A stretch of 64,000 nucleotides of DNA from Monocercomonoides exilis PA203 (Eukaryota; Protista; Preaxostyla): assembly GCA_001643675.2 (NCBI GenBank), contig LSRY02000053.1, forward strand, positions 124,001 through 188,000, written 5' to 3'. Positions 32,780 to 59,575 of the stretch are shown here, piece by piece (within the stretch, counting starts at the first letter, position 1; each line of letters opens with the position of its first letter). The notes beneath the pieces are model-generated. The model was not told the origin of the DNA. It saw only the letters and a program-made list of their open reading frames with translations, and did no database searches. A program made the translations under genes and the position numbers.

Positions 32780-35700
32780 TTTTGATTTGCATTAAATGCC
32801 CTTTGGTTTTTCAAGATAAAGTTACGCGGGAGATATGCGTCCAGCGTTGTAATACTTTTTTTCTTGACTCAAATTCTATTTTTTAATTCCAATCAAAAGA
32901 AGCATCTCATTATTATTTTGGCAAGCAAGCTACCCAACATTTAATTTGTATTTAATTCACTCATAACGTGGATTGACAGAACAACACCACAACCCACAAA
33001 TCCACTCAAGGCAACTGCAACCCTGGAAATAAAATCATTCATGCAATGAAAATGCAACAATATAAACATATAAATAATTGAATCCTGAATAATAGCAAAG
33101 ATATAAAAAACGCAAAAACAAAAAGAGAATAGTTTATTTTGGCGAAAGCTATTTACGAAATAATAGTGTCAAAATCAAAAAATTACATTTCCAATTCACG
33201 CGAGAACATTCACCGCACAATATTTTCCTTCAGAACTCGATCTCGCTATTTTCCTCACGAGAGTTCCATTTTGAAGCCTTTCAATTTTATTTATCGGCTT
33301 AGCTTTTTATTTGCAATTGGCTTTCAGTTTCTTTTTGCAGCATTGCCCTTTCTTCAATGTTTGAACGGAATTTGAGCTCAAACGAAGCAATTACTCCCTG
33401 GCTTCATTTTGCTTTGATGAAATTTTGCTTTCACAGTTATCCAATGTCTGGCTCGTCCTTTTTTCTCTTTCGCATCCACTTTTTCCTATCCTACTATTTT
33501 CGTCCATTCCGAAGATTGCGTCAGAAATAGTAAATAGCAATGCCTCTTTTGGCAGGCATTGAGCAAACACTCTTTTCAAATTTACAAGTGCCGGGCGCTC
33601 ACTTCCGTCTTTTGTAAGGCAGCCCTTTATAACATCACAAAAAAGCGTTCCTTCAATCGCCTTCGTGTCGGGTTTTTCTCCATTGACTATTTTCTGTCCT
33701 GCTGTCTCAGCCTCGTATTCTCCAAACGGGATCTGAAGCGTCAGGCACTCCCACAGCATCATCCCGATCGAGAACACCACAGACTCCTTTGTTGCATCCA
33801 TCTTCTTGTTTATCAGCAGTTCTGGTGCCTTCCACCTCAAGCACTCCTTCCTGTTGTCTTCATCATCCTCAAACGCTGATGACGGCAGAGAATCTCTGTC
33901 GTCGTCGTCATCATCATCAGCACTTGCAGATGTCACAACCGTTGATGAAGAGACGGATGAAGTGTCAGAGTCTGAGGAACAATCAGAGTGCAATGCAATG
34001 CAGATGACCATGTGCTCCGAAAACAGCACAATGTGCGGACTCAGATTGATAAGTGATTGGAGTGGGTTTTCCATTTCGTCAAACGAGTGGAGTGCCAAAT
34101 TGACCACCCAGAACAGGATCTGAGCAGCCGAGACTTCCCTCTCCTGAAGAGTGCCAATCGCCATCTCTTTCTTCGCATTCCTTCCATGCAGCAACATGAA
34201 CAGCGAATCTCTCAAGTCCACAATCAGCTTCTCATGAGGAGACGAACAGGCCATGGCATCCACCAGATTCGACATCGATGAGGTTGTTGGACACAAATCT
34301 TCTCCGCATATAAAAGAAGAATCTGTATCTGTCGTTGAAGTCGACGAGATGGATGAGATGGATGGTGAAGGAGTTCTCTTTCTTATCTCTTCTTCCTTCT
34401 CATCAACCTTCTCCAGCATCCATTGAGGAATCTTGTCCGAGTCTCTCCCCAAAATGTATTCAGTCGATCCACTTTCACTCAGCAAATGCTCAGATGACTC
34501 TGAGTGCCCCAAGCTTTTCTCATACACCCTCTTCTTTATTCTCTCCTCGTTCTTCTTCTCTGCCTCCCTCTCTGCTCTCCTCCATTGCTCTTCAGGCGAC
34601 ATCTCCATCGTCACCATCTCAAACGCCTTCGGATCCTTCTTCACTGTGTCTTCCACAATTATCTCCAATTCTTCTGTTCTTCTTTTTTGCTTTTTCCATC
34701 GGACAACGAATATGACAAGGGCGATGAGAATAATTAAAAGAACAACAGCCATGATAATTACAATCAACACCCATGAAGATTTTCCTTCTTTTCCTCCTTC
34801 AACAAGTATTTCATTTCTGTTTGTCTGTGTTTCTGATTTGTTCTTTAATGAGAGCGGCATTGTTGAGGATGAAAATTTTCCGAACACAATTGTTGTGGAG
34901 AGTTCTGACATATCAACTGCTGATGCTAACCTTGATGATGGAATTGTTCCAACAACTTCAGTTTCAGAAACAAAGCTGTTTTCATCAAATAGATACCGCT
35001 CGGCCAACTCCACATCGTTGACTGTACATATCAATTTGAAAGATAGATCGCACGGTAGGAAAAGTGACCCTACGAATTTGATCTTGGCCTCACTCTCAGA
35101 TTCATCCAGAGTTGCTGATTCCAATTGAGGAATAAAAAACGAAGAGAGTCGTTCCTGTGCAATGCCCTCCATGCTACAATCTTCGCTCGTGATCCACAAC
35201 GAAGTATTATCTTTCAAGCCATCTCCACCTTTCAAGCTGATAATTGTTATTGAAGCAGAATTGAAGCAGAAGATATTCCGGCGGAGTGATGGATACTTCG
35301 ATATCAAGGGGCTGTTTTCATAAAATTCACCTTTCTCGATCGTCATGTTGCTTGCTTCCAACGACAATCCGCCAGATGAAGAATTCGATATTGTCACGTC
35401 CTTCATCAGCGCTGCTGCATGCGACAAATGGATGAGAGATCCATTCCATTTACAAACATTCTCTTTGCTATTAGTCATTTCCTGCCTCCCTACAAACTCG
35501 CACATGTGCATTGAAATGTCAGGCGCACTGCTGACATCCACGATGCTCCCTTTTTTCGATAATGACACACACTTCGAGCATGAGCAGTTTGACAGGTTTA
35601 TTCTGGCAGAAGGCGAAGATGACGAAAGAGCAGATGCACCAAAAGAGTCACAACTGAAATTTTTGATGGAAGAACTACCAAAAGATACAGCTCCCGACAT

Positions 35701-38700
35701 ATCATCACAAATGGCAATGACACTGCCCTCACAAGACTTCACTTCATCCACAACCACATCATCAATCACCACGCTCTTGCACTCTCCAACTTCAAATAGA
35801 TTGGATAACAGCTCAATCTGCTTTAGATTCAAACTTGCCAGAGACACGTTGTTGCTGCGAATCAGTAGGAACACTGGTTGCTCAAATGAAATCTCTAACA
35901 CGGTGCAATTATCGATGAACAGAAGCCCACTTACAACTCTGAGCAGCGACAAGTTGAGGGCTACGTGGTGGGTGCTATTTGAAAGCATGTCAGATGCAAA
36001 AAGGATAGACGAGAGATAAAGCTGTCCGTTTGTCTCGCTGATGCATGCTTCTCCTGAAAATGAAAAGGAAGAGCCAACAGAGAATGACAAGCTCTCGATG
36101 CGGACTTTCTCCGAAGTAGTGATAAGACTGTCTCCATCTGGAATTTCTGAGTTTAAGAATACCAGTGCTGTGGACGGAGATTCAAGCGAGCGGATAGTTA
36201 CATTCAGTGCATTGCATTTACTCAAGATGGCAGTGCGGTCGGAGATCAGCAGCTGCGAATACAACGACGGAATGATGTGTAGCAGCCCTTCGCTCAATGT
36301 GCTGCATGGTCCATCCAGCCCTCCACACTGCTTGCTGTCCTCGTGATTGTCACTGGCCGAAGACACAAACACCGTCTCGCTCTGGTACTTCACAACTCTC
36401 TTCAGCAGATCTTCTTCGTCCAGATACATGTCCGAGGTGCATCCCCATATTGCGAGGTCTTTCACAAATGGGGCTCTGAAGTCCAGCAAAAACTGCCCAT
36501 CTGCGATCTGTGCTTCAATCGAGCGGCACTTCACATACACGTCTCTTCCACGATATGCAGCATTGTCTTTGAACGTGATGTTCGACAACACAAATGCTGC
36601 TGGCTTGGAAGCCGCAGATGTGCATTCCAAAAACAAGCTCCCACCCCTTCCAGTTGATGAGCAGAAGCAGTCGGTGATTGCAGAATATAAGCAATCAAAA
36701 CTTCCACCTTCATTCAATCTGAACAAAACAGTCCCTCCATTTTCGCATCCAGATCCTCCACATTTTTTGATTGTTGAATTGCGGATAACCATTTTCGTTG
36801 GATCACCATCTGTATTTCGGATCATCGCAATACTGTCAGTTGCACTCTGGACCACTTCTTCAAATGTGCTCCACTCAACAACAACCCTTTCATCGGCTTC
36901 GGCATTCGTGTTCTTGTCTTCAGCGAAAGACCTATCAATATGCAATCCGCTTCTGCCTTCCAGATTTATATTTTTCATTGTCAAGTTTCTGAATGTCAAA
37001 GATGCTGCAGATGCGATTGATATAATGTCAGAGGAAAATGAAAGCGAACGTATTGTCACAAACTCCAACAAAACCGTTCCTCCATCTGCCTTGATCAGCC
37101 CAAACCTGATTATGTCTTCTCCATCTTCCTTTTTGCGAATGAACAGTTTTTCAAAGTTAACGATCCTTCTCTAGAGCAAATATGCATCAACACATTTTCA
37201 TTACCAGTGAATGAAGATGGCAGAATGAAGCTTATTAATTCGAAATAGGAAATACCTGGAATTTTCATTGCTGCGTCCTCCGCTCCCTTAAGTGAAGAAC
37301 AACACTCCAGAGAGCACATATCTGTATTATTTGAGCTTATTGAAATTCCACAAAGATCGACGCAACCCCGAAGAACTGCTCTATTAAAAATGCTTATGCT
37401 TTTATTATTTCCTTCAGGCAATCGATCCAAAGAATAATCAATTGACATACAAGGATAATCAGAAAGTCCACAAACACACACATCCTTTCCATCGCCTCCA
37501 ATAAATATCTTTGATCCAAATGTTCGCCAGAAATAAACCAGTGGAATGGCATTTGTTGCATCGATTCCATCAAAGCCGCTCAATGAATCCAACGAAATAC
37601 CTGCCAGGCGTTCGAGCACAAACGGAAGGGATGTATTTGTGATGCTCTTTGTCAAGTTGGATGATTCAACAAACAGGTCATTTCCGTATTTCGCAACATT
37701 TGGTTTGCTGTTATCAAAAACAGGGGATGTTATTGTAAATGATGGATCGCCATCAACCAACGTTAGCGTTATTCCCCCGCCAAGCCCAATCTTGCCTTCT
37801 TCGGCAGGAGCAGTACATCTTGTGAAAGTGCATGAAATCATATTCAATTGAGTATTCCTTTTCAACTGCGTGAAAATAGCACCTCCTCTGCTTCCATCAG
37901 CCAGCACAGAGCATCCATCAAAAACATTCTCTTCAATATTTATTTGTGTATTTGTATTTTCTATGTTCCTGTTGTCAACACTTATACAGCCTCCACTTTC
38001 AGTTCTTCGAACAAAAGATGCTGCTTCACATTTCGTCAAATTCAAACACAGCACATTTATGCTTTCAACCAAGCATCCACTTTGCTGCCCATTTCCTGAA
38101 AAGTTGCTTTCCACAATTTCGATCGAAGGCCCTTCTCCACCACTTCCATCAACAATAATCGCACTCACCTGCCATCCGATTGCATTGCCAAACACATTGC
38201 TCATCACAATCTCGCCTCCTTCCGCTTTCACAAAGGAAATACGCAATTCATTTTCCGATGCAACAATTCCACAGTTTTGAATTGTCAATGTGCTGGAAAC
38301 ACAATGGAAAATACTTCCATAAGATCCAATTCTTTCTGAGAGTGAAAGCACCACTTCAATGAATGATACTGGACAGTGTGTCTCGAATATTCCACTTTGA
38401 GCACCAGAAATATCACTAGCTATCCCATAATTCGATTCATTTCCTTCTCCGCTCACACTCCATTCCTCTATCTTCATGTTCAATTCTTCTCCAAAAGAGA
38501 ACGGCGAGCTCAGCTTGATTGACTTGCTTTTGCCTGAAAACCTCAAACTGGCTGCTTTTGTGATCGTGCTGCACGGAACTTGAACATATCCACAACCACT
38601 GAAATCATGAGCCTCTTGTCCACCCACGTGACATGGTGCTGTGAAGTTATTCCACAGATACACAACGAGCGGTATTTCGAATTCTTCATTTGTTGTTGAG

Positions 38701-39533
38701 CGCTCAAAGCCGTTCAACTTTTCCAAGACATTCAAATCAATACCAAAACAAAATGTTGCTGCATTAGTCACAGCACTCAAATCATCAGCATCCAGAAACA
38801 CATCTTTCCCTTTCCCTCCGTTGCACCCATCAAATAGCACACTCTTCAAAGCAAAGTCAGATGCTTCATCTTCCAAAAACAAATACAGTCCTCCTCCCAA
38901 TCCTTTGCCTCCATCTTCATTTGCAGTTGCCTCACACTCTAAAAAGCCCACCTTTGCCTTTTTCTCAATCCCATTTCCATTATTTGAAGCAGCTTCTGTG
39001 ATATTACCAACACTGAAGCTCGATCCACTTTTCATATACATCCATAATCCTCCTCCATTTCCCCTCATACTTTTGCACGAAGTTATGTTTCCTTCTTCAA
39101 GCACAAAAGAGCAGCCTTTTTCAAGTTTACATTCAATCGCTCCCCCGTTTTGATTTATTCCTACAAAGTTGTGAAGAGTGCAGCGGACAATTTCAATTTT
39201 CTTGGCACTTGTGGAAGAGGTCAAACGAGAGGATGCCATTCTTTCTGATGAAGCAGTCGAAGAAAGAATGCAATCACTCATTTGAAGTGAAGCCAGATTC
39301 TTCACTTCAAGCAAGCCTGATGCATAAGTTGTTCCAACTTCATTCATCTGAATGCTTTTTAATTCTGCTTCTGTGCTGCTTCCTGACAACGAGATCAATG
39401 GACTTCCGCTCAATATCATTGACGAAGCTGAGAATGTGTCAATTGTTAACATCCCCGAGTCAACAGACAAGAATGCAAATGTCAATTTTGATAAAGGATT
39501 TTGAAGAGAAAGGGAACATTGAGACAAAGTCAG

Positions 39534-39564
<31 letters not shown>

Positions 39565-40948
39565 ATAAAAGTGGAATGTGAAAGAGAAGGAGGAAGAGAG
39601 AAGATAAGAGTTGATAAGACTGTTTCAACCCCAACTGCAACCATTGCCGTATTTGCTCCTGCGGTGGAATCAGAAACTGTCCATCCACTTTTATCGTCTT
39701 TTCCTCGGATTTCATGTTTCTGTTCACTAAATGTCAATTCATCGCTCATCATTATCATTCCATTCACAATAATTTTCTTTGTTCCTGCCAACCGCGTGAG
39801 GGGAGTGCTTCAAGGTCAAACAAGGAAATTGGACAATTCCACAATGCGAGTGATTGGATGCCTCTACGTTACTCACGCAAATCTCTGATAGAGGAGAAAG
39901 AAGATAGATGCACAGAGGAATGGCCACACTAGCGTTTCCGCCATCGTATCCTCTCATCTTGTCAAGAGAATCCAAAGAGGCTGTTACACATGTGATTTTT
40001 TGTGACTTTGCAGTTTCTTCCAGATTTGGAGAAATGACAAAGATATCATTTCCCCATTTGGCTGTGTTTGTGCCAAAGGAAGAAGAAATCAGGAAATTGG
40101 GGTTTTCATTCATCAACCGAAGTAAGATTCCTCCTCCTAGTCCATTTGTCGCTGAGCAATAGCACTCATCAAAAGACCCATCTTTCACTTTCACCTCATT
40201 TGCATCCCCAATATACAGCATTGTTGATCCTCCATTCTCTGAAATTGCGCTCCCACACTCTTCAAATACACTTGAATTAAAGTCAATGTTTGTCTTGCTA
40301 TTGGATAATGACATCACAGCTGCATCATTTGTTGTTCTTTCAATCCCATTAAAGGCACACTCCGATAGTATCAATGAAACTGCATTCGTTGAAGAAATCG
40401 AAAACAATGAAACAGTGGAGATGGTCTTTGCCCACTTCACATGATCCATCTGCAACTTACCATTCTGAACATTTATCAGTCCTGTTGAAAAAGCTGTTTC
40501 TGAAGTTTGACCGCTTCCTGCAGATATGGTCAATCTGCTTATATGCATCTCTCCTGCACTGCTTATCTCAAACAGCTTTGAACCCCGATTATTTACATAT
40601 GAAAAGTCATATACAAGTGCAAAGTTATTCAAATTTAATGTTCCTACAGAGACTGAAAAGAGAAACAATCCAGCTGCTTCAAATTCTGTTTGCATTGTCG
40701 TGCTCGAATCACTTTGCCCGCATATTGTGAATGTGTTGGTACCACAATCCACACTGCATGTTTCGACAATTGTTCCTCCCAGTATTTCAATGTCTTGCAC
40801 AACACCTGGAATCATCTGTGTCAGACAATGGCTGACTGTGCAGCAGGGATGGCTTTCATTGATGCCACATGCAAATGCATCTCTTGCATTCTCCTGATTC
40901 TGCTTCGATCCCACATATCTGATCCTTCCTCCATCATTCCGAAGCCAG
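32780..40948. repeat. Left arm of ~8.17-kb inverted repeat
   Basis: Reverse complement of 51405-59575. The six-frame ORF translations mirror each other, and coordinate sums shift only between 92352 and 92355, explained by four 1-bp indels. Confidence 0.97.
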
Positions 40949-42525
40949 CAACTACAATCATCTATTGAAGTTGTTGCATAATTTGAGCTTACTCGTATTC
41001 CAGTTTGACGAGTTGATCGACATGACACATCGATTGTGTTTTGTTGTTGTGAAACTAACAGCACATCGCATCCTCCATATATCCCAACATTATCATGGAA
41101 AAAGCAAAAGAATATATTTTTTTCAGTGTATTGAATGTTTATACATAAACTGAGTCCACCTCCTCCATTCATGGCATAATTATTTGTGAATAAACAATTG
41201 CGGATGAGAGGATAAATTGACATATCCCAAATTTGAATTCCTCCTCCAACAGGTGTTGATTCATTAGAAGTTGTGCAATTGACGAATGAACAATCATGGA
41301 TTTTATCCCCATCAGTGAAAGCACGTTTGGAGAAAACTGATATTCCACCTCCATCATTTCCAACACAACAATTTTTGAATGAGTTGTTTTCGAGAAAATA
41401 TGTTGTTTGCGGATTGTCTATACAAATCGCACCTCCAGCTTCACCAAAAGATGGATCTGGGGCTTGACATCCGAGAAAGACACAATGTCTGATTGAGATT
41501 TGTGAGATTGATTTTGTGTATATTGCTCCTCCTCGTCCACTCTGAGCAGTATCATTTCTGAAATAGCACAATGAAAGAGTCAGTGTTGAAGCGCTGTTTC
41601 CTGATATGCAAATGGCTCCTCCATCTGTTGCGGAGGTGCAGTCCATCCATTCGCAATTGGTCATATTGATTGTGTTGGAGGTGTTAATTGTCGTTTGTTT
41701 GTCGTAATTGATGAGTTTGTTGATGTTGTTCAAGAACGAAACGTTTCTGCACACCAACTCTTTCGATTTCTTCAATCCATTCATCACTGTTCCATCCAAT
41801 GCATTTTCACATGCGAAAGCAACACAACTCTCCATCATGCTTGTCTCAATCATGTTAAACTGACCATCAGTTTTTCCTGTATGTATTTGGTTATGAACGT
41901 TGGTAATATTATTGAAAATTGAATTTTCATATGAGAACAAATGACAACTTTCAATATCAAACATTTTTCTTCCACACAGCACAATATTCTGAAAAAGAGA
42001 CGAATCAATCAACAAAGATGAAGTTTCACCTTTCACATATCCAATTGATTCGACACTTTCTTGAAGAAGATTGATATCAATTGAGAAATTGTGTGCAACG
42101 AATGATGAACTTTGGATGTTCAACAACGGTTCAAATCTTGTAGGTTTTGTGACTTGGCACGAAGTAATACAAATATTTGAAATGTCGAATGCACAGATGA
42201 GATTCGAATGAACTATTTGTTCAAAGAGAATGTTGCTTATAGCTGTTGAAGAATTAGAAATAGTATATTTACACAAAAGTGAAGTGAAACCATCACTTCG
42301 AAATGAATACTGCTTTTCAAAGCTGCCATTGTTTGTAAAGAATTTATCTTTGTGGCTTTTGTGACAATAAAGCAAGCAACGGACTTTTTCTTTAAATGTG
42401 TCTTCAATTATCTGAATGTTGAAACATTGAGTAGAGTCATTTCTCACATAAATTTGATTGTTGCTTTTGATATTTGCAGCCTTTGACAATGCCAAAAGAA
42501 GGGCAAAATTGAACAAAACAATCAT
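33391..42525 (-). CDS. Giant type-I membrane receptor A (~3,040 aa): signal peptide, Cys-rich GGAI/FxxC beta-helix-like ectodomain, TM helix, tyrosine-kinase-like pseudokinase tail; two apparent frameshifts
   Basis: ORFs 42753-39739, 39791-37110 and 37071-33391 join when an extra G at ~39800-39803 and a missing T at ~37130-37134 are corrected from the other arm. Likely start MIVLFNFALLLALSKA at 42525. TM WVLIVIIMAVVLLIILIALVIFVV-RWKK. Tail motifs RWKAPE, VFSIGMMLWECLTLQIPF and ERP. Confidence 0.85.
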
Positions 42526-43396
42526 TGAAGAATTATGGTTCGAAAGAAAGTAATTTTTGTATTTTGTGTTATTTTTAATTTCATTTTTAAGAAAATGCAA
42601 TGTTTCATATATATTTTTTCTTAAAAAAAAGCATTTGTTCCACAAAAAAAAGCTTTTTCCTCGCAAATTCTTTTTTAAACAAAGTTGGGATGCACTCTGT
42701 TGTGAAAGAATTGTTTTTCCAAAATATTGATAAAAACTCGTAAAAGAATGCAATTGAATTCAATTTATTTATCAATTTTGTTTTTGAAATGAACTTTTTT
42801 CTTGATCTCTTTTCAAATTATGACAACAGAATTTATTCAAAAAAAAAAAAAAAGACTTTTACACGAGTTTGTCACTTTAATAAAAGTGAAAAATATAGTG
42901 ACATTTAGATTTTCAAATAATTTTTTTTATCATTCATCCAAAAATGTGTATTATGCATAGAATATATTTTCGGTAATTTGAGAATTATCTTAGCAAACGA
43001 TGGTTCGAAAATTATTTGTAAGTTATCAAAATCTCAAAATGTTATATTCGAAAGCTGACACTTTTCTTTGACTAATAACTTACAAATCAAAACACTTTTG
43101 ATTATTTTCAAAAAAAAAAAAAAATAACATAACTTTTTAAAAGTTCACATAATTCAAATATAAGTTTTTCGAAAAAAATTGAGGAAATATTTCTGCAATT
43201 ATTACAAATAATTTTAGTAACAAACTATACAAAAATCATAAAAATTTGTATATAAAAATTGGTCATGTGGATTAAATACGTGAATATAATGAATATTCGA
43301 GATAAAAGGAAATGAAATGTTATTTGGTTTGATTGAATTTTTTTTTGAATATAATTGAAATCAGTTGATGCAATTTCATTTAAATCACTTCATGTT

Positions 43397-43491
43397 CAAT
43401 TCGCAATAGAGCGAATATCCGAACGCAAGGAGCAGGTTTGCTCCTCAATAATGAGTTTGATCTTAAATTATGGGTGGTTTAAGATCAAACT
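43397..43491. repeat. DIRS left terminus / left ITR
   Basis: 43447-43480 is the exact reverse complement of 49366-49399, extending imperfectly to ~43431. 43397-43458 is complementary to ICR 48674-48735 with one mismatch. Confidence 0.93.
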
Positions 43492-43558
43492 TCGCTAACA
43501 AATAAACCTTTGTTACACACCATTGTCCGCTATAATTATAACACAAGATCCTGTTAGA

Positions 43559-44769
43559 ATGGAAAACAGTGACAGCGAGGACAGAGGATTTGATCTTGCA
43601 CATAGACTTTCAAGGGTGGAAAATTTGATCGAGGAAATGGCGAGAAGCCGAGCAGTTCCGAGCCGCTCGGGAGCGGTAGGAATATTACCAATGAGAAAGA
43701 CGAAGAGGGAACGACCAAGAGGAAGATCTCTATCGAGATCAAGCGAATCTGAGTCCGAATCTGAGGTCACAGAGATGATCGCAAAGAAGAGACACAGACA
43801 GCGATTGAGGGGTAGTCGCTGACGTAACCAGACTAAGAAATGGGACGAAGAAGAAAGCAGCGAGAGCGATTCCGGAAATACAGAGAAGCGGGAAGAAGAG
43901 CAAGATAGATCCGAAGATTTCTTGGGAATTTTCCCAGACGAATGGTTAACGCCTAGGAGACAAGCAGGGGAACTGAAAAGATTCATGGACTTTTGCAAAG
44001 CCGGATCTATCAGAATAAATGATGACATCCTGAACACTTTTATCCCGGAGACGGAGAAGAACTTTTTCACTAGACACACTGACATGAGTTGGAACGCCCT
44101 AGCAGTGACGGGGGTCACTGCGGAGGGAAGAAAAGATTCCCCAGAAGCCGACCGGGTTATCGAGCTGCTTCAGCCCGCCCTGGAATCGGGGTTCGAAGCC
44201 GCTAAGGCGATTGCAGCCATTACTACAAGAGAATTGAAAAGGACGCGCTTAGAGGAAGAAGAGAAAGAGCGACTGAGGGGGCTCTTTTGCGCGTACGCCC
44301 TAATAGCAGACTGTATTAGCCGCATAAACTTGCTGAAAGTTATCCCTCAGTCAAGCTGGGAGAATGTGAAGTGTTTTCTGGATGGGGAAGTCCAAGGACA
44401 TCCCAGAGAGTTTTGGGATACTAGTGGATAGCACCAGCTTTTTTCGTCCAGGGGGGGGATGCTCCAGGGTACGGAGCATCCCCCGTTTCTTCCACAACCT
44501 TCGGACTCGCCCCAGTCAGGGGCGTGCGCCCAGGAAAGTACAGCACAGGCAGAAACGCCCAAGGCTTTGCCTACAGGCAATTCCAAAAGCAAGGTTTCGA
44601 GGGGAGTTTTACAAATTTCAAACAAAGAAGGAGGTCAACACAAACTCGACCACAACAGGCCCCAGCAACAGCTGGGAGAGCTCCCTCGTTCACAGTCCCC
44701 CTTCCTCCAGCTCCCCCGAGGATACAGGGAGAATCAGCAGCAGGAACAGCTACTGGAACGAGCCAGTAA
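43559..44769 (+). pseudogene. DIRS gag-like ORF1, disrupted
   Basis: ATG 43559 and in-frame TGA 43820-43822, with the same frame continuing to TAG 44431. Removing one G from each of the runs at 44383-44386 and 44451-44458 gives ..FLDGKSKDIPESFGILVDSTSFFRPGGDAPGY..TGTSQ* ending at 44769 (inferred). Confidence 0.65.
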
Positions 44770-48172: not shown

Positions 48173-48673
48173 GACAAGTCGGAGAGAGATAGCGAAAGAA
48201 AGGATATAAGAAATAAGAATACAGAATCTGAAACAAAGGAGTATCCTGAAGAAACATCACAATCTGGGGGAGAAGCGGAGACGAGCAAGAGAAAGAATTC
48301 GAAGAGACGAGGGTCGACTCGAGAGAAGAGTTCGCATCATGAGGACGATATAACACAACCCACCAGGGGTGATGAGACACCTTCCATAATTCCCCGCAGC
48401 ATCATGGAGCTTACGGAAGGTAGACAAACTGCCTTGCAGAAGAAGCTCGAAACCGATCGGGGGAAACGCGGAGAGAGAAGCATAGGACAAATTGTCATGC
48501 CCGCTCAAGTACAGAAGACCCGATCGAGAACCCCCCGAAGACAGCGCAAGAAGGGGAGGGAGTAGGGATAGAGGCTGCACCTTCATCCGCAGTCCCTCTG
48601 TTCATCCGCCGCACGACAAGGTGCTAGGCAGGAGGGTTTAAGATCAGAGGAGAGAAGAGAACGAGGGATTTCA

Positions 48674-48772
48674 AAACTCATTATTGAGGAGCAAACCTGC
48701 TCCTTGCGTTCGGATATTCGCTCTGTTGCGAATTGATAGAACGCAGTGAGACAGGATTTGCTCCGAAATAAT
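48674..48772. repeat. DIRS internal complementary region (ICR)
   Basis: 48674-48735 is the reverse complement of the left end and 48733-48772 is the reverse complement of the right end (49394-49433). The two halves share TTG at 48733-48735. Confidence 0.95.
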
Positions 48773-49365
48773 ACTAACGCGGATGGAGAGACTCAGAGCG
48801 GCTGGGTGCGAGATGAGAGAGAAACATATGGTGAAGAATAGGACGAGGAAAAAGTGGCGAGATAGCAGAGGAGATAGGAAAAGAGAAACCGTCCAGGGAT
48901 ATTAAGCGCACCCAGAACCTGTATTTACAAACAGGAAAGCTAGTGAGACCGTTAAGAAGAACCTTACTCCTTTAATTCATGGCAAGAAAGTGCAAAGAAA
49001 AGAGTCAGACTGGTCCATACAGAGTGTGGCGAGCGGATTGGCTCTGCTGGATCAGTAGAAGAGCGGGAGGCAGAGCATAATACACGCAGTTTTCTTGTCC
49101 ACGCCTCGCGAAAGCGAGAGTGGTTTTTCTTTCTGCTCCGTTTTTAATTTTCGCCTCACCGGATCCCTGCACAGCCTGCAGGAGGGAGCTCCGAGGGGTA
49201 TGCCCCCTGCCCTCTGGTCTTCGAGACCATGGCAAAAGGCGAAGTCGGTGGTGGAGTGAAGCGGACAATGCATTATTTTATTATTATTAATTTTTAATGT
49301 TATTGTTTTGTTTTTTCATCTCGCCCTTTTTTCCACGTCATTTGTGAGGGCGAAGTTTTTCACTC

Positions 49366-49433
49366 AAACCACCCATAATTTAAGATCAAACTCATTATTT
49401 CGGAGCAAATCCTGTCTCACTGCGTTCTATCAA
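49366..49433. repeat. DIRS right ITR / right terminus
   Basis: AAACCACCCATAATTTAAGATCAAACTCATTATT is inverted relative to the left end, followed by the ICR-complementary extension ending in TCTATCAA. Confidence 0.93.
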
Positions 49434-49845
49434 CAATTCGATTTGTGAAAATTCTTATTTCAAAAGTGCATTGATTTTTTCACAATTTTTCACGTTTCAA
49501 AAATTATTGTTATTTTCATGTTTTCCATTGGATAATCAAAACGAAAATGATATTCTTCATCATTTTCATTTGAATTCACAAAATTTTTTAAGTCAAACGA
49601 AATTTTTGAAATTCAAAAAAAACTAAATGACTGGAACAACACAAATATTGTTTTATTCCTAAAAAGGAATTTCAAAATGAGTAATAATATGATTAAATTT
49701 TTTTATTTTTTAATTTTATAATTTGGTTTAAAGCTATTCCACTTTTTCTTGCAAAATTTTCGAAAAGATTAATTTGTGACATCTTTTTTTTAAATTAATG
49801 GTTGGATCACAAGTCACACAACTGCCTCATTTTTTGTTACCATTT

Positions 49846-52787
49846 ATGCGATATTCTTTGTTGTTATTTCTTTTTTTTATTTTTCAAACAACTCAAAATG
49901 AACACAATTTGATTATCAAAAAGTTGAACAAAGAACTTGAAACGAACAAAAACCAGTTTGCAAAATTCTCTTATCTGTAAATTCATTTTGGATGTTTCGA
50001 ATTTTCTTTATTCACTTGCAGAAACATCAATTACAAAGCTGATGAAGTGGATGAAGTTTATCTAACTGTGGATGCATCAATGAACACAACATGCTCAATT
50101 GTGAATTCACTTTTTATCTCCTCGAACAGCTCTGTAAAAATGATTTCATTGGTGTTTAAGACATTCAGTTCTCCGCCCACAACAATTGACAAACATTCTT
50201 CAATGAAGTTCACAAACTGTATTTTCTTCGCTTCATCATCTTCTTTGTTTGTGCTTCAAGGAGGGACTCTTTGTTTGAATAACTTAAGTGTTGTGTCTCA
50301 TGCAAATACGAATATTCAAAATCTAATAAAAACATCAAGCGAAAAATCTTCATTTGTTATTCGGAATTCTATGTTTTCAAATCTTATTGTTTCATCGCCA
50401 TCTCATTTTCTGTATTCGGAGTTGTGTCAAAGTGTGGAGGTTGGAGATTGCAACTTTTCCAATATCTCATCTAATTCTCAATCGAAGGACAATCATAAAA
50501 CAAAACATACATGCTGTTCACAATTAATGGATAATTGTGCTGTTATCTCAACCCCTTCAAACATTTTCTATTCTTGCTTTTCTGGTAATGAAGACTGTTC
50601 TCGAATGTGTTTATTTCGAAACAACTCATTTTCATTTGTGACACGAGTTGATAATTATGAACTGAAAGAAAAAGTGAACACAACAGAAACTCAATCCTTT
50701 GAACACTGCGAATGGGTGGACTGCACAGAAGAAAAAGGAGGAGCAATATTTGTTCATGATAATTCTGAAGCAACATTAACAGTTGAGAATTCATCTTTCG
50801 CAAGATGTCACGCTTCTGTTTCAAGAGGTGGTGGTTTATATGCGTTGAACATTGCTGAATGCATCGTAAAATTCACATCATTTTCTCAATGCACATGTGC
50901 AGTGACAAATATTGATTGCGGAGGAGGTGGAATAATGGCAGAGAATGTCCAAATTCAATCACTTGTTGATTGTTGTTCTTTCCAGAACTGTTCATCAGGA
51001 AACGATGGAGGAGCAATAAATTTCAAACCAACAATGACAAAAAGGCAAAAACGATGTATAGTTGATTCAACGTTTGAGCACTGCTGGGCTAACAGTACTT
51101 CAGATGGAACTGGTGGAGCAATAGAACATTGGCAAAGCGTTGATAAAGTCATAATTTCAAATTGCCTGTTTGCTCATTGTAATTCGAAGTGTGGAGGAGG
51201 GGCTGCAAGCATGCTTGTTAATGGGAAAAATAATGGCATACTTTTATATTATTGTTTTTTTCACAATAATAAATGCCTCAAATTTGGTAATGATATTATT
51301 CTTCATGATTCAATATCAAATAATATTGATATAAGCTGCTACTCAACTGGAATCTCATCAAATAGAGTTAGTACAAGTTATTTGAATTTTGTTGATAGAA
51401 GTGACTGGCTTCGGAATGATGGAGGAAGGATCAGATATGTGGGATCGAAGCAGAATCAGGAGAATGCAAGAGATGCATTTGCATGTGGCATCAATGAAAG
51501 CCATCCCTGCTGCACAGTCAGCCATTGTCTGACACAGATGATTCCAGGTGTTGTGCAAGACATTGAAATACTGGGAGGAACAATTGTCGAAACATGCAGT
51601 GTGGATTGTGGTACCAACACATTCACAATATGCGGGCAAAGTGATTCGAGCACGACAATGCAAACAGAATTTGAAGCAGCTGGATTGTTTCTCTTTTCAG
51701 TCTCTGTAGGAACATTAAATTTGAATAACTTTGCACTTGTATATGACTTTTCATATGTAAATAATCGGGGTTCAAAGCTGTTTGAGATAAGCAGTGCAGG
51801 AGAGATGCATATAAGCAGATTGACCATATCTGCAGGAAGCGGTCAAACTTCAGAAACAGCTTTTTCAACAGGACTGATAAATGTTCAGAATGGTAAGTTG
51901 CAGATGGATCATGTGAAGTGGGCAAAGACCATCTCCACTGTTTCATTGTTTTCGATTTCTTCAACGAATGCAGTTTCATTGATACTATCGGAGTGTGCCT
52001 TTAATGGGATTGAAAGAACAACAAATGATGCAGCTGTGATGTCATTATCCAATAGCAAGACAAACATTGACTTTAATTCAAGTGTATTTGAAGAGTGTGG
52101 GAGCGCAATTTCAGAGAATGGAGGATCAACAATGCTGTATATTGGGGATGCAAATGAGGTGAAAGTGAAAGATGGGTCTTTTGATGAGTGCTATTGCTCA
52201 GCGACAAATGGACTAGGAGGAGGAATCTTACTTCGGTTGATGAATGAAAACCCCAATTTCCTGATTTCTTCTTCCTTTGGCACAAACACAGCCAAATGGG
52301 GAAATGATATCTTTGTCATTTCTCCAAATCTGGAAGAAACTGCAAAGTCACAAAAAATCACATGTGTAACAGCCTCTTTGGATTCTCTTGACAAGATGAG
52401 AGGATACGATGGCGGAAACGCTAGTGTGGCCATTCCTCTGTGCATCTATCTTCTTTCTCCTCTATCAGAGATTTGCGTGAGTAACGTAGAGGCATCCAAT
52501 CACTCGCATTGTGGAATTGTCCAATTTCCTTGTTTGACCTTGAAGCACTCCCTCACGCGGTTGGCAGGAACAAAGAAAATTATTGTGAATGGAATGATAA
52601 TGATGAGCGATGAATTGACATTTAGTGAACAGAAACATGAAATCCGAGGAAAAGACGATAAAAGTGGATGGACAGTTTCTGATTCCACCGCAGGAGCAAA
52701 TACGGCAATGGTTGCAGTTGGGGTTGAAACAGTCTTATCAACTCTTATCTTCTCTCTTCCTCCTTCTCTTTCACATTCCACTTTTAT

Positions 52788-52818
<31 letters not shown>

Positions 52819-55800
52819 CTGACTTTGTCTCAATGTTCCCTTTCTCTTCAAAATCCTTTATCAAAATTGACATTTGCATTCTTGTCTGTTGACTCGGGGA
52901 TGTTAACAATTGACACATTCTCAGCTTCGTCAATGATATTGAGCGGAAGTCCATTGATCTCGTTGTCAGGAAGCAGCACAGAAGCAGAATTAAAAAGCAT
53001 TCAGATGAATGAAGTTGGAACAACTTATGCATCAGGCTTGCTTGAAGTGAAGAATCTGGCTTCACTTCAAATGAGTGATTGCATTCTTTCTTCGACTGCT
53101 TCATCAGAAAGAATGGCATCCTCTCGTTTGACCTCTTCCACAAGTGCCAAGAAAATTGAAATTGTCCGCTGCACTCTTCACAACTTTGTAGGAATAAATC
53201 AAAACGGGGGAGCGATTGAATGTAAACTTGAAAAAGGCTGCTCTTTTGTGCTTGAAGAAGGAAACATAACTTCGTGCAAAAGTATGAGGGGAAATGGAGG
53301 AGGATTATGGATGTATATGAAAAGTGGATCGAGCTTCAGTGTTGGTAATATCACAGAAGCTGCTTCAAATAATGGAAATGGGATTGAGAAAAAGGCAAAG
53401 GTGGGCTTTTTTAGAGTGTGAGGCAACTGCAAATGAAGATGGAGGCAAAGGATTGGGAGGAGGACTGTATTTGTTTTTGGAAGATGAAGCATCTGACTTT
53501 GCTTTGAAGAGTGTGCTATTTGATGGGTGCAACGGAGGGAAAGGGAAAGATGTGTTTCTGGATGCTGATGATTTGAGTGCTGTGACTAATGCAGCAACAT
53601 TTTGTTTTGGTATTGATTTGAATGTCTTGGAAAAGTTGAACGGCTTTGAGCGCTCAACAACAAATGAAGAATTCGAAATACCGCTCGTTGTGTATCTGTG
53701 GAATAACTTCACAGCACCATGTCACGTGGGTGGACAAGAGGCTCATGATTTCAGTGGTTGTGGATATGTTCAAGTTCCGTGCAGCACGATCACAAAAGCA
53801 GCCAGTTTGAGGTTTTCAGGCAAAAGCAAGTCAATCAAGCTGAGCTCGCCGTTCTCTTTTGGAGAAGAATTGAACATGAAGATAGAGGAATGGAGTGTGA
53901 GCGGAGAAGGAAATGAATCGAATTATGGGATAGCTAGTGATATTTCTGGTGCTCAAAGTGGAATATTCGAGACACACTGTCCAGTATCATTCATTGAAGT
54001 GGTGCTTTCACTCTCAGAAAGAATTGGATCTTATGGAAGTATTTTCCATTGTGTTTCCAGCACATTGACAATTCAAAACTGTGGAATTGTTGCATCGGAA
54101 AATGAATTGCGTATTTCCTTTGTGAAAGCGGAAGGAGGCGAGATTGTGATGAGCAATGTGTTTGGCAATGCAATCGGATGGCAGGTGAGTGCGATTATTG
54201 TTGATGGAAGTGGTGGAGAAGGGCCTTCGATCGAAATTGTGGAAAGCAACTTTTCAGGAAATGGGCAGCAAAGTGGATGCTTGGTTGAAAGCATAAATGT
54301 GCTGTGTTTGAATTTGACGAAATGTGAAGCAGCATCTTTTGTTCGAAGAACTGAAAGTGGAGGCTGTATAAGTGTTGACAACAGGAACATAGAAAATACA
54401 AATACACAAATAAATATTGAAGAGAATGTTTTTGATGGATGCTCTGTGCTGGCTGATGGAAGCAGAGGAGGTGCTATTTTCACGCAGTTGAAAAGGAATA
54501 CTCAATTGAATATGATTTCATGCACTTTCACAAGATGTACTGCTCCTGCCGAAGAAGGCAAGATTGGGCTTGGCGGGGGAATAACGCTAACGTTGGTTGA
54601 TGGCGATCCATCATTTACAATAACATCCCCTGTTTTTGATAACAGCAAACCAAATGTTGCGAAATACGGAAATGACCTGTTTGTTGAATCATCCAACTTG
54701 ACAAAGAGCATCACAAATACATCCCTTCCGTTTGTGCTCGAACGCCTGGCAGGTATTTCGTTGGATTCATTGAGCGGCTTTGATGGAATCGATGCAACAA
54801 ATGCCATTCCACTGGTTTATTTCTGGCGAACATTTGGATCAAAGATATTTATTGGAGGCGATGGAAAGGATGTGTGTGTTTGTGGACTTTCTGATTATCC
54901 TTGTATGTCAATTGATTATTCTTTGGATCGATTGCCTGAAGGAAATAATAAAAGCATAAGCATTTTTAATAGAGCAGTTCTTCGGGGTTGCGTCGATCTT
55001 TGTGGAATTTCAATAAGCTCAAATAATACAGATATGTGCTCTCTGGAGTGTTGTTCTTCACTTAAGGGAGCGGAGGACGCAGCAATGAAAATTCCAGGTA
55101 TTTCCTATTTCGAATTAATAAGCTTCATTCTGCCATCTTCATTCACTGGTAATGAAAATGTGTTGATGCATATTTGCTCTAGAGAAGGATCGTTAACTTT
55201 GAAAAACTGTTCATTCGCAAAAAAGGAAGATGGAGAAGACATAATCAGGTTTGGGCTGATCAAGGCAGATGGAGGAACGGTTTTGTTGGAGTTTGTGACA
55301 ATACGTTCGCTTTCATTTTCCTCTGACATTATATCAATCGCATCTGCAGCATCTTTGACATTCAGAAACTTGACAATGAAAAATATAAATCTGGAAGGCA
55401 GAAGCGGATTGCATATTGATAGGTCTTTCGCTGAAGACAAGAACACGAATGCCGAAGCCGATGAAAGGGTTGTTGTTGAGTGGAGCACATTTGAAGAAGT
55501 GGTCCAGAGTGCAACTGACAGTATTGCGATGATCCGAAATACAGATGGTGATCCAACGAAAATGGTTATCCGCAATTCAACAATCAAAAAATGTGGAGGA
55601 TCTGGATGCGAAAATGGAGGGACTGTTTTGTTCAGATTGAATGAAGGTGGAAGTTTTGATTGCTTATATTCTGCAATCACCGACTGCTTCTGCTCATCAA
55701 CTGGAAGGGGTGGGAGCTTGTTTTTGGAATGCACATCTGCGGCTTCCAAGCCAGCAGCATTTGTGTTGTCGAACATCACGTTCAAAGACAATGCTGCATA

Positions 55801-58800
55801 TCGTGGAAGAGACGTGTATGTGAAGTGCCGCTCGATTGAAGCACAGATCGCAGATGGGCAGTTTTTGCTGGACTTCAGAGCCCCATTTGTGAAAGACCTC
55901 GCAATATGGGGATGCACCTCGGACATGTATCTGGACGAAGAAGATCTGCTGAAGAGAGTTGTGAAGTACCAGAGCGAGACGGTGTTTGTGTCTTCGGCCA
56001 GTGACAATCACGAGGACAGCAAGCAGTGTGGAGGGCTGGATGGACCATGCAGCACATTGAGCGAAGGGCTGCTACACATCATTCCGTCGTTGTATTCGCA
56101 GCTGCTGATCTCCGACCGCACTGCCATCTTGAGTAAATGCAATGCACTGAATGTAACTATCCGCTCGCTTGAATCTCCGTCCACAGCACTGGTATTCTTA
56201 AACTCAGAAATTCCAGATGGAGACAGTCTTATCACTACTTCGGAGAAAGTCCGCATCGAGAGCTTGTCATTCTCTGTTGGCTCTTCCTTTTCATTTTCAG
56301 GAGAAGCATGCATCAGCGAGACAAACGGACAGCTTTATCTCTCGTCTATCCTTTTTGCATCTGACATGCTTTCAAATAGCACCCACCACGTAGCCCTCAA
56401 CTTGTCGCTGCTCAGAGTTGTAAGTGGGCTTCTGTTCATCGATAATTGCACCGTGTTAGAGATTTCATTTGAGCAACCAGTGTTCCTACTGATTCGCAGC
56501 AACAACGTGTCTCTGGCAAGTTTGAATCTAAAGCAGATTGAGCTGTTATCCAATCTATTTGAAGTTGGAGAGTGCAAGAGCGTGGTGATTGATGATGTGG
56601 TTGTGGATGAAGTGAAGTCTTGTGAGGGCAGTGTCATTGCCATTTGTGATGATATGTCGGGAGCTGTATCTTTTGGTAGTTCTTCCATCAAAAATTTCAG
56701 TTGTGACTCTTTTGGTGCATCTGCTCTTTCGTCATCTTCGCCTTCTGCCAGAATAAACCTGTCAAACTGCTCATGCTCGAAGTGTGTGTCATTATCGAAA
56801 AAAGGGAGCATCGTGGATGTCAGCAGTGCGCCTGACATTTCAATGCACATGTGCGAGTTTGTAGGGAGGCAGGAAATGACTAATAGCAAAGAGAATGTTT
56901 GTAAATGGAATGGATCTCTCATCCATTTGTCGCATGCAGCAGCGCTGATGAAGGACGTGACAATATCGAATTCTTCATCTGGCGGATTGTCGTTGGAAGC
57001 AAGCAACATGACGATCGAGAAAGGTGAATTTTATGAAAACAGCCCCTTGATATCGAAGTATCCATCACTCCGCCGGAATATCTTCTGCTTCAATTCTGCT
57101 TCAATAACAATTATCAGCTTGAAAGGTGGAGATGGCTTGAAAGATAATACTTCGTTGTGGATCACGAGCGAAGATTGTAGCATGGAGGGCATTGCACAGG
57201 AACGACTCTCTTCGTTTTTTATTCCTCAATTGGAATCAGCAACTCTGGATGAATCTGAGAGTGAGGCCAAGATCAAATTCGTAGGGTCACTTTTCCTACC
57301 GTGCGATCTATCTTTCAAATTGATATGTACAGTCAACGATGTGGAGTTGGCCGAGCGGTATCTATTTGATGAAAACAGCTTTGTTTCTGAAACTGAAGTT
57401 GTTGGAACAATTCCATCATCAAGGTTAGCATCAGCAGTTGATATGTCAGAACTCTCCACAACAATTGTGTTCGGAAAATTTTCATCCTCAACAATGCCGC
57501 TCTCATTAAAGAACAAATCAGAAACACAGACAAACAGAAATGAAATACTTGTTGAAGGAGGAAAAGAAGGAAAATCTTCATGGGTGTTGATTGTAATTAT
57601 CATGGCTGTTGTTCTTTTAATTATTCTCATCGCCCTTGTCATATTCGTTGTCCGATGGAAAAAGCAAAAAAGAAGAACAGAAGAATTGGAGATAATTGTG
57701 GAAGACACAGTGAAGAAGGATCCGAAGGCGTTTGAGATGGTGACGATGGAGATGTCGCCTGAAGAGCAATGGAGGAGAGCAGAGAGGGAGGCAGAGAAGA
57801 AGAACGAGGAGAGAATAAAGAAGAGGGTGTATGAGAAAAGCTTGGGGCACTCAGAGTCATCTGAGCATTTGCTGAGTGAAAGTGGATCGACTGAATACAT
57901 TTTGGGGAGAGACTCGGACAAGATTCCTCAATGGATGCTGGAGAAGGTTGATGAGAAGGAAGAAGAGATAAGAAAGAGAACTCCTTCACCATCCATCTCA
58001 TCCATCTCGTCGACTTCAACGACAGATACAGATTCTTCTTTTATATGCGGAGAAGATTTGTGTCCAACAACCTCATCGATGTCGAATCTGGTGGATGCCA
58101 TGGCCTGTTCGTCTCCCTCATGAGAAGCTGATTGTGGACTTGAGAGATTCGCTGTTCATGTTGCTGCATGGAAGGAATGCGAAGAAAGAGATGGCGATTG
58201 GCACTCTTCAGGAGAGGGAAGTCTCGGCTGCTCAGATCCTGTTCTGGGTGGTCAATTTGGCACTCCACTCGTTTGACGAAATGGAAAACCCACTCCAATC
58301 ACTTATCAATCTGAGTCCGCACATTGTGCTGTTTTCGGAGCACATGGTCATCTGCATTGCATTGCACTCTGATTGTTCCTCAGACTCTGACACTTCATCC
58401 GTCTCTTCATCAACGGTTGTGACATCTGCAAGTGCTGATGATGATGACGACGACGACAGAGATTCTCTGCCGTCATCAGCGTTTGAGGATGATGAAGACA
58501 ACAGGAAGGAGTGCTTGAGGTGGAAGGCACCAGAACTGCTGATAAACAAGAAGATGGATGCAACAAAGGAGTCTGTGGTGTTCTCGATCGGGATGATGCT
58601 GTGGGAGTGCCTGACGCTTCAGATCCCGTTTGGAGAATACGAGGCTGAGACAGCAGGACAGAAAATAGTCAATGGAGAAAAACCCGACACGAAGGCGATT
58701 GAAGGAACGCTTTTTTGTGATGTTATAAAGGGCTGCCTTACAAAAGACGGAAGTGAGCGCCCGGCACTTGTAAATTTGAAAAGAGTGTTTGCTCAATGCC

Positions 58801-58964
58801 TGCCAAAAGAGGCATTGCTATTTACTATTTCTGACGCAATCTTCGGAATGGACGAAAATAGTAGGATAGGAAAAAGTGGATGCGAAAGAGAAAAAAGGAC
58901 GAGCCAGACATTGGATAACTGTGAAAGCAAAATTTCATCAAAGCAAAATGAAGCCAGGGAGTAA
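49846..58964 (+). CDS. Giant type-I membrane receptor B (~3,020 aa): same stalk, TM and pseudokinase as A, different N-terminal ~505 aa; two apparent frameshifts
   Basis: Signal-peptide-like MRYSLLLFLFFIF at 49846. A probable 45-nt GT-AG intron (49977-50021) removes an in-frame TAA. ORFs 50047-53421, 53324-58123 and 58095-58964 join after removing an extra T (53407-53412) and an extra C (58115-58117) relative to the other arm. Confidence 0.85.
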
Positions 58965-59575
58965 TTGCTTCGTTTGAGCTCAAATTCCGTTCAAACATTG
59001 AAGAAAGGGCAATGCTGCAAAAAGAAACTGAAAGCCAATTGCAAATAAAAAGCTAAGCCGATAAATAAAATTGAAAGGCTTCAAAATGGAACTCTCGTGA
59101 GGAAAATAGCGAGATCGAGTTCTGAAGGAAAATATTGTGCGGTGAATGTTCTCGCGTGAATTGGAAATGTAATTTTTTGATTTTGACACTATTATTTCGT
59201 AAATAGCTTTCGCCAAAATAAACTATTCTCTTTTTGTTTTTGCGTTTTTTATATCTTTGCTATTATTCAGGATTCAATTATTTATATGTTTATATTGTTG
59301 CATTTTCATTGCATGAATGATTTTATTTCCAGGGTTGCAGTTGCCTTGAGTGGATTTGTGGGTTGTGGTGTTGTTCTGTCAATCCACGTTATGAGTGAAT
59401 TAAATACAAATTAAATGTTGGGTAGCTTGCTTGCCAAAATAATAATGAGATGCTTCTTTTGATTGGAATTAAAAAATAGAATTTGAGTCAAGAAAAAAAG
59501 TATTACAACGCTGGACGCATATCTCCCGCGTAACTTTATCTTGAAAAACCAAAGGGCATTTAATGCAAATCAAAA
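51405..59575. repeat. Right arm of ~8.17-kb inverted repeat
   Basis: Begins CTGGCTTCGGAATGATGG (WLRNDGG) and ends ~610 bp past the stop codon. Mirrors 32780-40948. Confidence 0.97.

Follow-up and report, generated by a model that had tools for sequence, protein, structure and literature searches.

In a 64,000-nucleotide (nt) stretch of the genome of the gut protist Monocercomonoides exilis PA203 (Preaxostyla; GenBank assembly GCA_001643675.2, contig LSRY02000053.1, positions 124,001 to 188,000 of the forward strand; here called the window, with position 1 as its first letter), two very large receptor-like genes lie head-to-head as the arms of a palindrome. The two genes, A (MONOS_18204) and B (MONOS_16052), start with different N-terminal tips and continue with one identical body. 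We propose, with a probability of roughly 0.78, that this is an old head-to-head pair of receptor-pseudokinase genes whose arms have been homogenised by recurrent arm-to-arm gene conversion, i.e., by concerted evolution. The proposal draws mainly on the identity of the arms and on a second palindrome of equal design on another contig, whose own arms are nearly identical although the two loci differ from each other by ~17%.

Results

Two different tips on one identical body

A base-by-base walk along the two arms (Table 1) gave 8,168 matched positions and no substitution. Arm A and arm B differ only by four single-base homopolymer indels, so that the repeat search returned the inverted repeat as five perfect pieces split by single-base length differences. 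Each gene copy carries two frameshifts, and each of these lies where the opposite copy stays in frame. The identical stretch comprises the last ~2,520 codons of the genes and 610 bp of 3' flank. It ends on the inner side one base before the tryptophan (W) codon of a WLRNDGG motif in both genes, and on the outer side ~610 bp beyond the stop codons, where the arm joint falls within non-homologous, A/T-rich flank. Past the arm ends, sensitive blastn detected no homology in the outer flanks or between the spacer halves, apart from the own repeats of a retroelement in the spacer. The flanking genes, encoding a Sec7 protein on the left and a phosphopantetheinyl transferase (PPTase) on the right, are unique. 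An earlier sequence-only reading of the window had described two divergent receptor genes that share ~2,520 amino acids (aa) and ~610 bp of flank without a substitution, and an abrupt end of identity inside the coding sequence (CDS) at 40948/51405. Both descriptions are borne out by the walk, except that the four indels had been overlooked.

The encoded proteins have the layout of receptors, with a signal peptide, a tip of ~500 aa, an ectodomain body of ~2,000 aa, one transmembrane segment, and a C-terminal kinase-fold domain. The transmembrane segment is placed by a hydropathy peak at residues 2015-2037 of the gene model P0001 and by a TMEM154-like Pfam match. In the kinase-like domain the PF07714 match is limited to profile positions 160-256, so that the C-lobe alone is recognisable; among PDB structures, the ILK pseudokinase matches best. 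A motif scan of the intracellular region found none of GxGxxG, VAIK, HRD, and DFG, only APE and the C-lobe being kept, and this absence of catalytic motifs marks the domain as a pseudokinase. The architecture of a receptor protein kinase of the tyrosine-kinase-like (TKL) group is thus present, whereas its catalytic motifs are not. All homologues among the matches listed, at least 120, are from M. exilis, and the family of beta-helix receptor-pseudokinases to which the genes belong has more than 120 members. Tyrosine-kinase-like proteins form the largest M. exilis family, with 332 predicted kinases, and this family overlaps the "unclassified repeats" of the genome (PMC6759080, PMC8767320). MONOS_18204 and MONOS_16052 are members of it that differ by lacking all catalytic motifs. 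Neither of the two papers mentions gene conversion, and the text of PMC8767320 contains neither "palindrom" nor "inverted".

Tip A and tip B are collinear and share 29% protein identity over 387 aa, whereas sensitive blastn detected no DNA similarity between them. In an alignment of ~97 paralogues, few motifs near the tip/body boundary are as well conserved as WLRND[GF]G. An AlphaFold model of the tip with 380 aa of the body contains two right-handed beta-helix domains, the first of which is tip A (predicted local distance difference test, pLDDT, of 80-93 over residues 84-530), with the joint at residue 527 and a low-confidence linker at 532-560 after it. The WLRND joint is accordingly predicted by the model to be the end of the first beta-helix and a domain boundary. 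Foldseek matches were two-domain PL6 beta-helix lyases, tailspikes, and Ag43, and Pfam families were found on neither the tips nor the first body pieces. Weak Atlas neighbours (scores up to 0.90) and the beta-helix fold make a resemblance of the GGAI/FxxN pattern to chlamydial Pmp repeats a lead.

A paralogous palindrome dates the identity of the arms

The second palindrome is formed by MONOS_17426 (P0121) and MONOS_14320 (P0003) on LSRY02000016.1. Here, too, two unlike tips stand head-to-head on one body type; at the protein level the A-type tip is 85% identical to tip A, and the B-type tip is 79% identical to tip B. The locus is homologous to the window over 33676-43399 and 49450-58679, which covers body, tips, and 5' regions. 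Between the loci, tip A has a nucleotide identity of 88.8% and a synonymous divergence (dS) of 0.31, tip B has 83.0% and 0.54, and the body has 83.8% and 0.39-0.46. Because the same pair of tips is found at both loci, the pair of heads should be older than the split of the loci. The ratio of nonsynonymous to synonymous divergence (dN/dS) between the palindromes is 0.22-0.32 in all parts of the genes and, together with RNA contigs that match the body without differences, makes both receptor genes of the window appear functional. In the annotation, the first residue of the MONOS_14320 model lies 40 aa beyond the WLRND joint, and the model omits an intact, in-frame ORF (open reading frame) for the B-type tip directly upstream (L001 8513-9868).

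The arms of the paralogous palindrome show two tiers of divergence. Counted from the W codon, there are three mismatches in the first 42 nt (at +24, +27, and +42), none from +200 to +9,700 (~9.6 kb of identical sequence), and ~3% divergence further outward to +12,200, where homology ends; among the loci compared, this 3% zone does not recur as a dispersed repeat. The two tiers (0% and 3%) point to re-homogenisation after an older duplication, and thus to copying on at least two occasions at this locus. Moreover, each locus has its own version of the final 285 nt of the CDS and of the 3' flank; these are unrelated from one locus to the other and yet identical in both arms of a locus, which argues for arm-to-arm copying after the loci had split. 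With an arm divergence of 0% against 16-17% of nucleotides between the two palindromes, the identity of the arms is, by this comparison, evidently far younger than the split. Near-zero arm divergence at two loci that differ from each other by ~17% is to be expected under frequent conversion and would be an unlikely coincidence under rare single events.

The best-surviving alternative is a one-off and very recent inverted duplication, in which a fold-back or break-induced-replication (BIR) event, starting from microhomology at WLRND, overwrote B's body with that of A plus 610 bp of flank, with no conversion since. Such an event would leave zero differences and two razor-sharp ends, as seen here. 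It also suits the outer joint in non-homologous, A/T-rich flank, although a non-homologous step is needed in any case, and no remnant of an older B-type body was found in the window by tblastn. We nevertheless regard it as unlikely, since the paralogous locus, separated by a dS of 0.3-0.5, has a tip pair and a body of the same types, since the arms have hardly diverged at either locus, which is improbable for rare events, and since the paralogous arms are two-tiered.

Under recurrent gene conversion, the reading that we prefer, B's original body would have been replaced by the body of A, and breaks in one arm would be repaired with the other arm as template, so that repeated intrachromosomal conversion keeps the arms identical. 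Inward copying would have to stop at the WLRND motif, because beyond it the two tips offer no homologous DNA, and since the motif is a domain boundary, the joint would remain in frame and structurally harmless. The position of the outer ends in non-homologous flank suggests that copying went on past the limit of homology, in a BIR-like manner, on at least one occasion. We infer that conversion or BIR was the molecular route, that it continues today and was not confined to a few discrete events, and that there may be a benefit in having two sensing heads on one signalling body.

Gene B is a chimera of two subfamilies

Separate trees were built for the body and for the tip, the latter on the last 300 tip residues. 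In the tip tree, tip A groups with P0004, P0056, P0060, P0069, and P0005 (SH-aLRT, the Shimodaira-Hasegawa-like approximate likelihood-ratio test, 99), and tip B lies inside a main clade of 36 members (SH-aLRT 96), being 45-60% identical to main-clade tips. An approximately unbiased (AU) test rejects A-type and B-type tips as a single clade (delta lnL 170, p = 0.00035). In the body tree the shared body joins P0003 (100), then P0004, and then P0069, P0060, P0005, and P0007 (97). As the relatives of the body are the relatives of tip A, the trees show that gene A is native, with tip and body from the same subfamily, and that gene B is a chimera with a main-clade tip on the body of A.

Other family members change their relatives at the same motif. 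P0077 (MONOS_3388) has a tip like those of P0110, P0061, and P0078 (80-90%) and a body like that of P0079 (MONOS_7096; 92-100%), with which it shares 6.1 kb of body; the nucleotide identity of 92% sets in 27 nt downstream of the W codon. The tips of P0077 and P0079 come from different clades, and their loci (L002 and L007 on LSRY02000025.1) are ~130 kb apart; we read the pair as an older, dispersed head/body chimera. P0056 has a tip of the A-type clade, but within 20 aa of the motif its relatives change to the body group of P0034 and P0032. Re-assortment of heads and bodies has thus recurred at this joint over evolutionary time. Neither P0056 nor P0077 and P0079 lie in palindromes. The palindromic state is not general in the clade, as P0004 is arranged tail-to-tail with another family gene and P0005, P0060, and P0077 are solitary. 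In P0099 (MONOS_12396), ~20 residues after the joint are near-identical to the body of genes A and B, the rest of its body being only ~48% identical; this patch right after WLRN may be a short conversion patch.

The chimeras could also be taken as signs of programmed head-swapping, similar to antigenic variation, in which constant bodies would receive new tips at WLRND, possibly from silent archives; P0077 versus P0079, and P0056, do switch nearest relatives at the motif. For the palindromes we consider this very improbable. A-type and B-type tips are paired at both of them, which makes them stable partners rather than exchanged cassettes, and with a tip dN/dS of 0.22-0.25, not above that of the body, there is no sign of rapid turnover or diversifying selection of the tips. 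Among the annotated short proteins tip B has no close tip-only relative (best match 57% identical), and an inversion of the spacer changes no protein. Nor was the joint shown to be special by a scan of pairwise identity steps along the family alignment, which found 874 steps at many positions and did not demonstrate breakpoint enrichment at the motif, the scan being confounded by uneven conservation.

Both arms are supported by contigs of three DNA runs

Logan contigs of three DNA runs (X1, X2, X3), all from the assembled strain, and of one RNA run were mapped on positions 49700-55600. Contig depth over tip B was ~92-103 in X1, 30-35 in X2, and 5-7 in X3, and over the body ~184-225, 61-77, and 5-15, i.e., roughly twice as high (typically ~200 versus 100, 65 versus 33, and 11 versus 6). 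The tip contigs of X1 and X2 stop exactly 30 nt (k-1) inside the body, which reveals a branch of the graph where two different tips enter one body, and an X3 contig from 2016 (51103-51450) crosses the joint of tip B and body by 46 nt. The variant contigs that reach substantial depth, over tip B as well as over the body, match the letters of the paralogous locus and do not indicate arm differences. The palindrome is not an assembly artefact, and the body is present in two copies. The RNA contigs extend over the body and are ambiguous as evidence for tip B. An RNA contig over tip B at 50494-50759 (X5, labelled synthetic metagenome) has three letters that are absent from the window and from the paralogous locus, so that this sample may contain another strain or a third copy resembling tip B.

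The contigs also bear on the four indels. The extra A at 53407 in arm B is missing from X1 and X3 contigs at full depth and is a homopolymer error of the nanopore assembly. At 55219, the in-frame form of B is kept in X1 and X3, the cleaner DNA runs, and the base is partly lost only in the error-rich X2, so that this indel, too, is an assembly error; at 52549 the contigs show no difference from the window. The 454-era gene model P0001 reads through all four indel sites, and according to the assembly paper multi-copy regions escape polishing by Nanopolish and Pilon (PMC8767320). Taken together, contigs, old gene model, and polishing gap favour reading the four indels as errors of the assembly, with arms that are in truth identical. 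Likewise, polishing errors are the best explanation of the frameshifts in both MONOS_18204 and MONOS_16052, with the old gene model as the sole witness for 58115.

An assembly that was made with Canu from Oxford Nanopore (ONT) reads and with Pilon, whose authors concede poor polishing of multi-copy regions, and that shows four homopolymer indels of the polishing type, could in principle have duplicated the body falsely or made two diverged arms identical. Such an artefact is scarcely credible in view of the body-to-tip depth of 2:1 in three short-read or 454 runs, the unitig branch at k-1 and the bridging contig, the paralogous locus as the source of the variant contigs of substantial depth over the body, the unique genes in the outer flanks, and the equal architecture of the paralogous locus.

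The retroelement in the spacer is incidental

The spacer between the two receptor promoters is interrupted by a DIRS-like retroelement with its own tyrosine recombinase. Relative to the paralogous spacer, which has no counterpart of it, the element is exactly the gap in homology (43399-49450), so that it must be a later insertion and incidental to the palindrome. A recombinase ORF (PF00589) between 8-kb inverted repeats might suggest a Flp- or shufflon-like switch that inverts or maintains the palindrome, but the probability of this is negligible, as the domain belongs to an element with its own reverse transcriptase (RT) frame and inverted termini, the element is absent from the paralogous palindrome, and inversion between identical arms is phenotypically silent. 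The locus thus does not fit a site-specific invertible switch, in which a recombinase would act at the borders and inversion would change the product.

Table 1. Features of the palindrome and its two receptor genes (positions in the window)
Feature	Position	Strand	Remarks
Palindrome arm A	32780..40948	-	Body of gene A and ~610 bp of 3' flank; repeat search and base-by-base walk
Palindrome arm B	51405..59575	+	Body of gene B and ~610 bp of 3' flank; repeat search and base-by-base walk
Unique spacer	40949..51404	.	10,456 nt; both tips, both 5' regions, one retroelement
Gene A (MONOS_18204)	33391..42525	-	Signal peptide, A-type beta-helix tip, body, transmembrane segment, pseudokinase; P0002 100% identical
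Gene B (MONOS_16052)	49846..58964	+	Chimera, B-type tip on gene A's body; P0122 model starts inside tip B
Tip A	40949..42525	-	525 aa; discrete right-handed beta-helix domain
Tip B, main exon	50021..51404	+	
Gene B 5' signal-peptide exon	49846-49975	+	Predicted
Gene B intron	49976-50020	+	Predicted; 45 nt, GTAAAT..CAG; needed for signal peptide of B
Inner identity boundary at WLRNDGG	51405..51426	+	Mirror in arm A 40927-40948
Transmembrane segment	57581..57649	+	Mirror in arm A 34705-34773
C-lobe of kinase-like domain	58491..58784	+	Mirror in arm A 33571-33864
Indel	34240 (A)/58115 (B)		G3 vs G4
Indel	37135 (A)/55219 (B)		T5 vs T6
Indel	38946 (A)/53407 (B)		A5 vs A6
Indel	39803 (A)/52549 (B)		G4 vs G3
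Assembly frameshifts, gene A	37135, 39803		
Assembly frameshifts, gene B	53407, 58115		
DIRS-like retroelement	43396..49450	+	Later insertion between two receptor promoters
Retroelement RT frame	44847-45884		PF00078; partial or broken
ORF with tyrosine-recombinase domain	44459-48172		PF00589 at end of ORF; RT in overlapping frame
Retroelement inverted termini	43396-43503 and 49340-49433		Internal complementary copy 48674-48736

Other features of the window

The Sec7 gene to the left of the palindrome is a single ORF of 3,652 aa (21617-32575) whose 5' part has 50-56% GC, against ~30% in intergenic DNA; a similar gene of 3,636 aa lies upstream of the paralogue P0004 (L004). A dispersed repeat or ORF family of ~0.8 kb occurs at 10222-11005, 13666-14438, and 17424-18180, with ORFs of ~250 aa that have no Pfam match. 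DNA that adjoins the right arm of the paralogous palindrome on its outer side is 67-72% identical to this family, and so are L006 19793-20565 and L007 21475-22246. An inverted repeat of 355 bp (5402-5756/6022-6376) lies where GC is 25%; its copies are 98% identical and may represent the ends of a small transposon.

Discussion

Several points weigh against recurrent conversion or temper the evidence for it. Conversion tracts, polymorphism, and spacer isomers are not directly observed in what are contigs of one strain, and the arms of the window, which end sharply on both sides without a diverged outer zone, would by themselves fit a single very recent inverted duplication. The 2:1 depth is a ratio of k-mer depths of Logan contigs, which by their source's own warning are not copy numbers, and since the reads come from the assembled strain itself, their support is technically and not biologically independent. 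GC content at third codon positions (GC3) is higher in the arms (0.35-0.45) than in the tips (0.27-0.32) of both palindromes and not so in the solitary P0005 and P0060, a pattern compatible with GC-biased conversion but, with few genes compared, weakly suggestive. Finally, the history may have been a different one, in which the split of the loci came first and the replacement of B's body followed, independently at either locus. That history would likewise imply recurrent arm-to-arm copying that stops at the WLRND motif, so that both a one-time chimera before the split and independent overwriting per locus imply the process that we propose.

The sequence-only reading had already recognised the tips as collinear but heavily diverged homologues, old tips on a body recently copied or homogenised, and the comparisons made here agree. 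It left two explanations side by side, exchange of the tip and conversion of the stalk, of which the second is now favoured and the first is not. Its caution that flipping the spacer alters neither protein is correct, as the arms are identical, and the separate trees for tip and stalk that it called for proved non-congruent, contrary to what would have refuted it. What is not supported is the locus as a candidate mechanism of receptor diversification or antigenic variation, given a pair of tips that has been stable at dS ~0.3-0.5 and is under a dN/dS of 0.22-0.25. The locus is a clean example of a known process and not a switch that creates new receptors.

The closest parallels are the palindromes of primate and mouse sex chromosomes, such as P1-P8 of the human Y (PMC3723533, PMC8600007, bioRxiv 10.1101/800185), which likewise have kb-scale inverted arms of >99.9% identity around a unique spacer. 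They also share with the M. exilis locus an arm identity far above the divergence from a homologous palindrome, i.e., concerted evolution, as well as sharp boundaries between arm and spacer, and inversions that are possible but silent. In contrast, the arms in M. exilis are much smaller (8-12 kb) and lie on an autosome-like contig of a protist, and the comparison made here is between paralogues rather than orthologues, with conversion inferred from sequence. In mammalian palindromes the genes of the arms typically lie whole within the arms. The arm boundary in M. exilis, however, falls in frame inside the CDS, so that the body is common to the two genes and the head is not.

Among metamonads, the surface family of variant-specific surface proteins (VSPs) in Giardia muris and G. 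intestinalis likewise includes identical inverted pairs, head-to-head or tail-to-tail, for which recombination or gene conversion has been invoked (PMC7641422). Whole genes are reported as identical in Giardia, whereas in M. exilis this holds only for the body, with heads from different subfamilies. The protein families are unrelated, and antigenic variation with one dominant expressed gene, as in VSPs, is not supported for the M. exilis pair. VSG, var, and Pneumocystis MSG are surface-antigen families with segmental gene conversion and mosaic formation. The receptors described here resemble these mosaics in the differing genealogies of head and body and in chimeras that break at conserved motifs, but the M. 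exilis locus is without an expression site, a shown silent donor of tips, or fast turnover, and the organism is a commensal.

For a eukaryote that is no model organism, the palindrome offers a clean case of concerted evolution that can be dated. Its built-in clock is the divergence between paralogous loci, in contrast to that between species in the studies of sex chromosomes, and its distinctive point is a conversion boundary inside a gene, in frame and at a domain boundary. For the annotation of the genome it means that the frameshifts in MONOS_18204 and MONOS_16052 need to be corrected and the missing tip added to the MONOS_14320 model, and that the "unclassified repeats" overlapping the kinase family are partly such palindromes. 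An antigenic-variation switch at the locus can be set aside. It is conceivable, if rather doubtful, that the conserved WLRND joint is a family-wide preferred point of recombination that re-assorts heads onto bodies, with palindromes keeping two heads on one co-evolving body; if so, the sensory repertoire of this protist would have been diversified in a modular, recombination-driven way that is evolutionary and not programmed. At the locus itself, a single palindrome yields two receptors that have different sensing heads and an obligatorily identical stalk, transmembrane segment, and pseudokinase.

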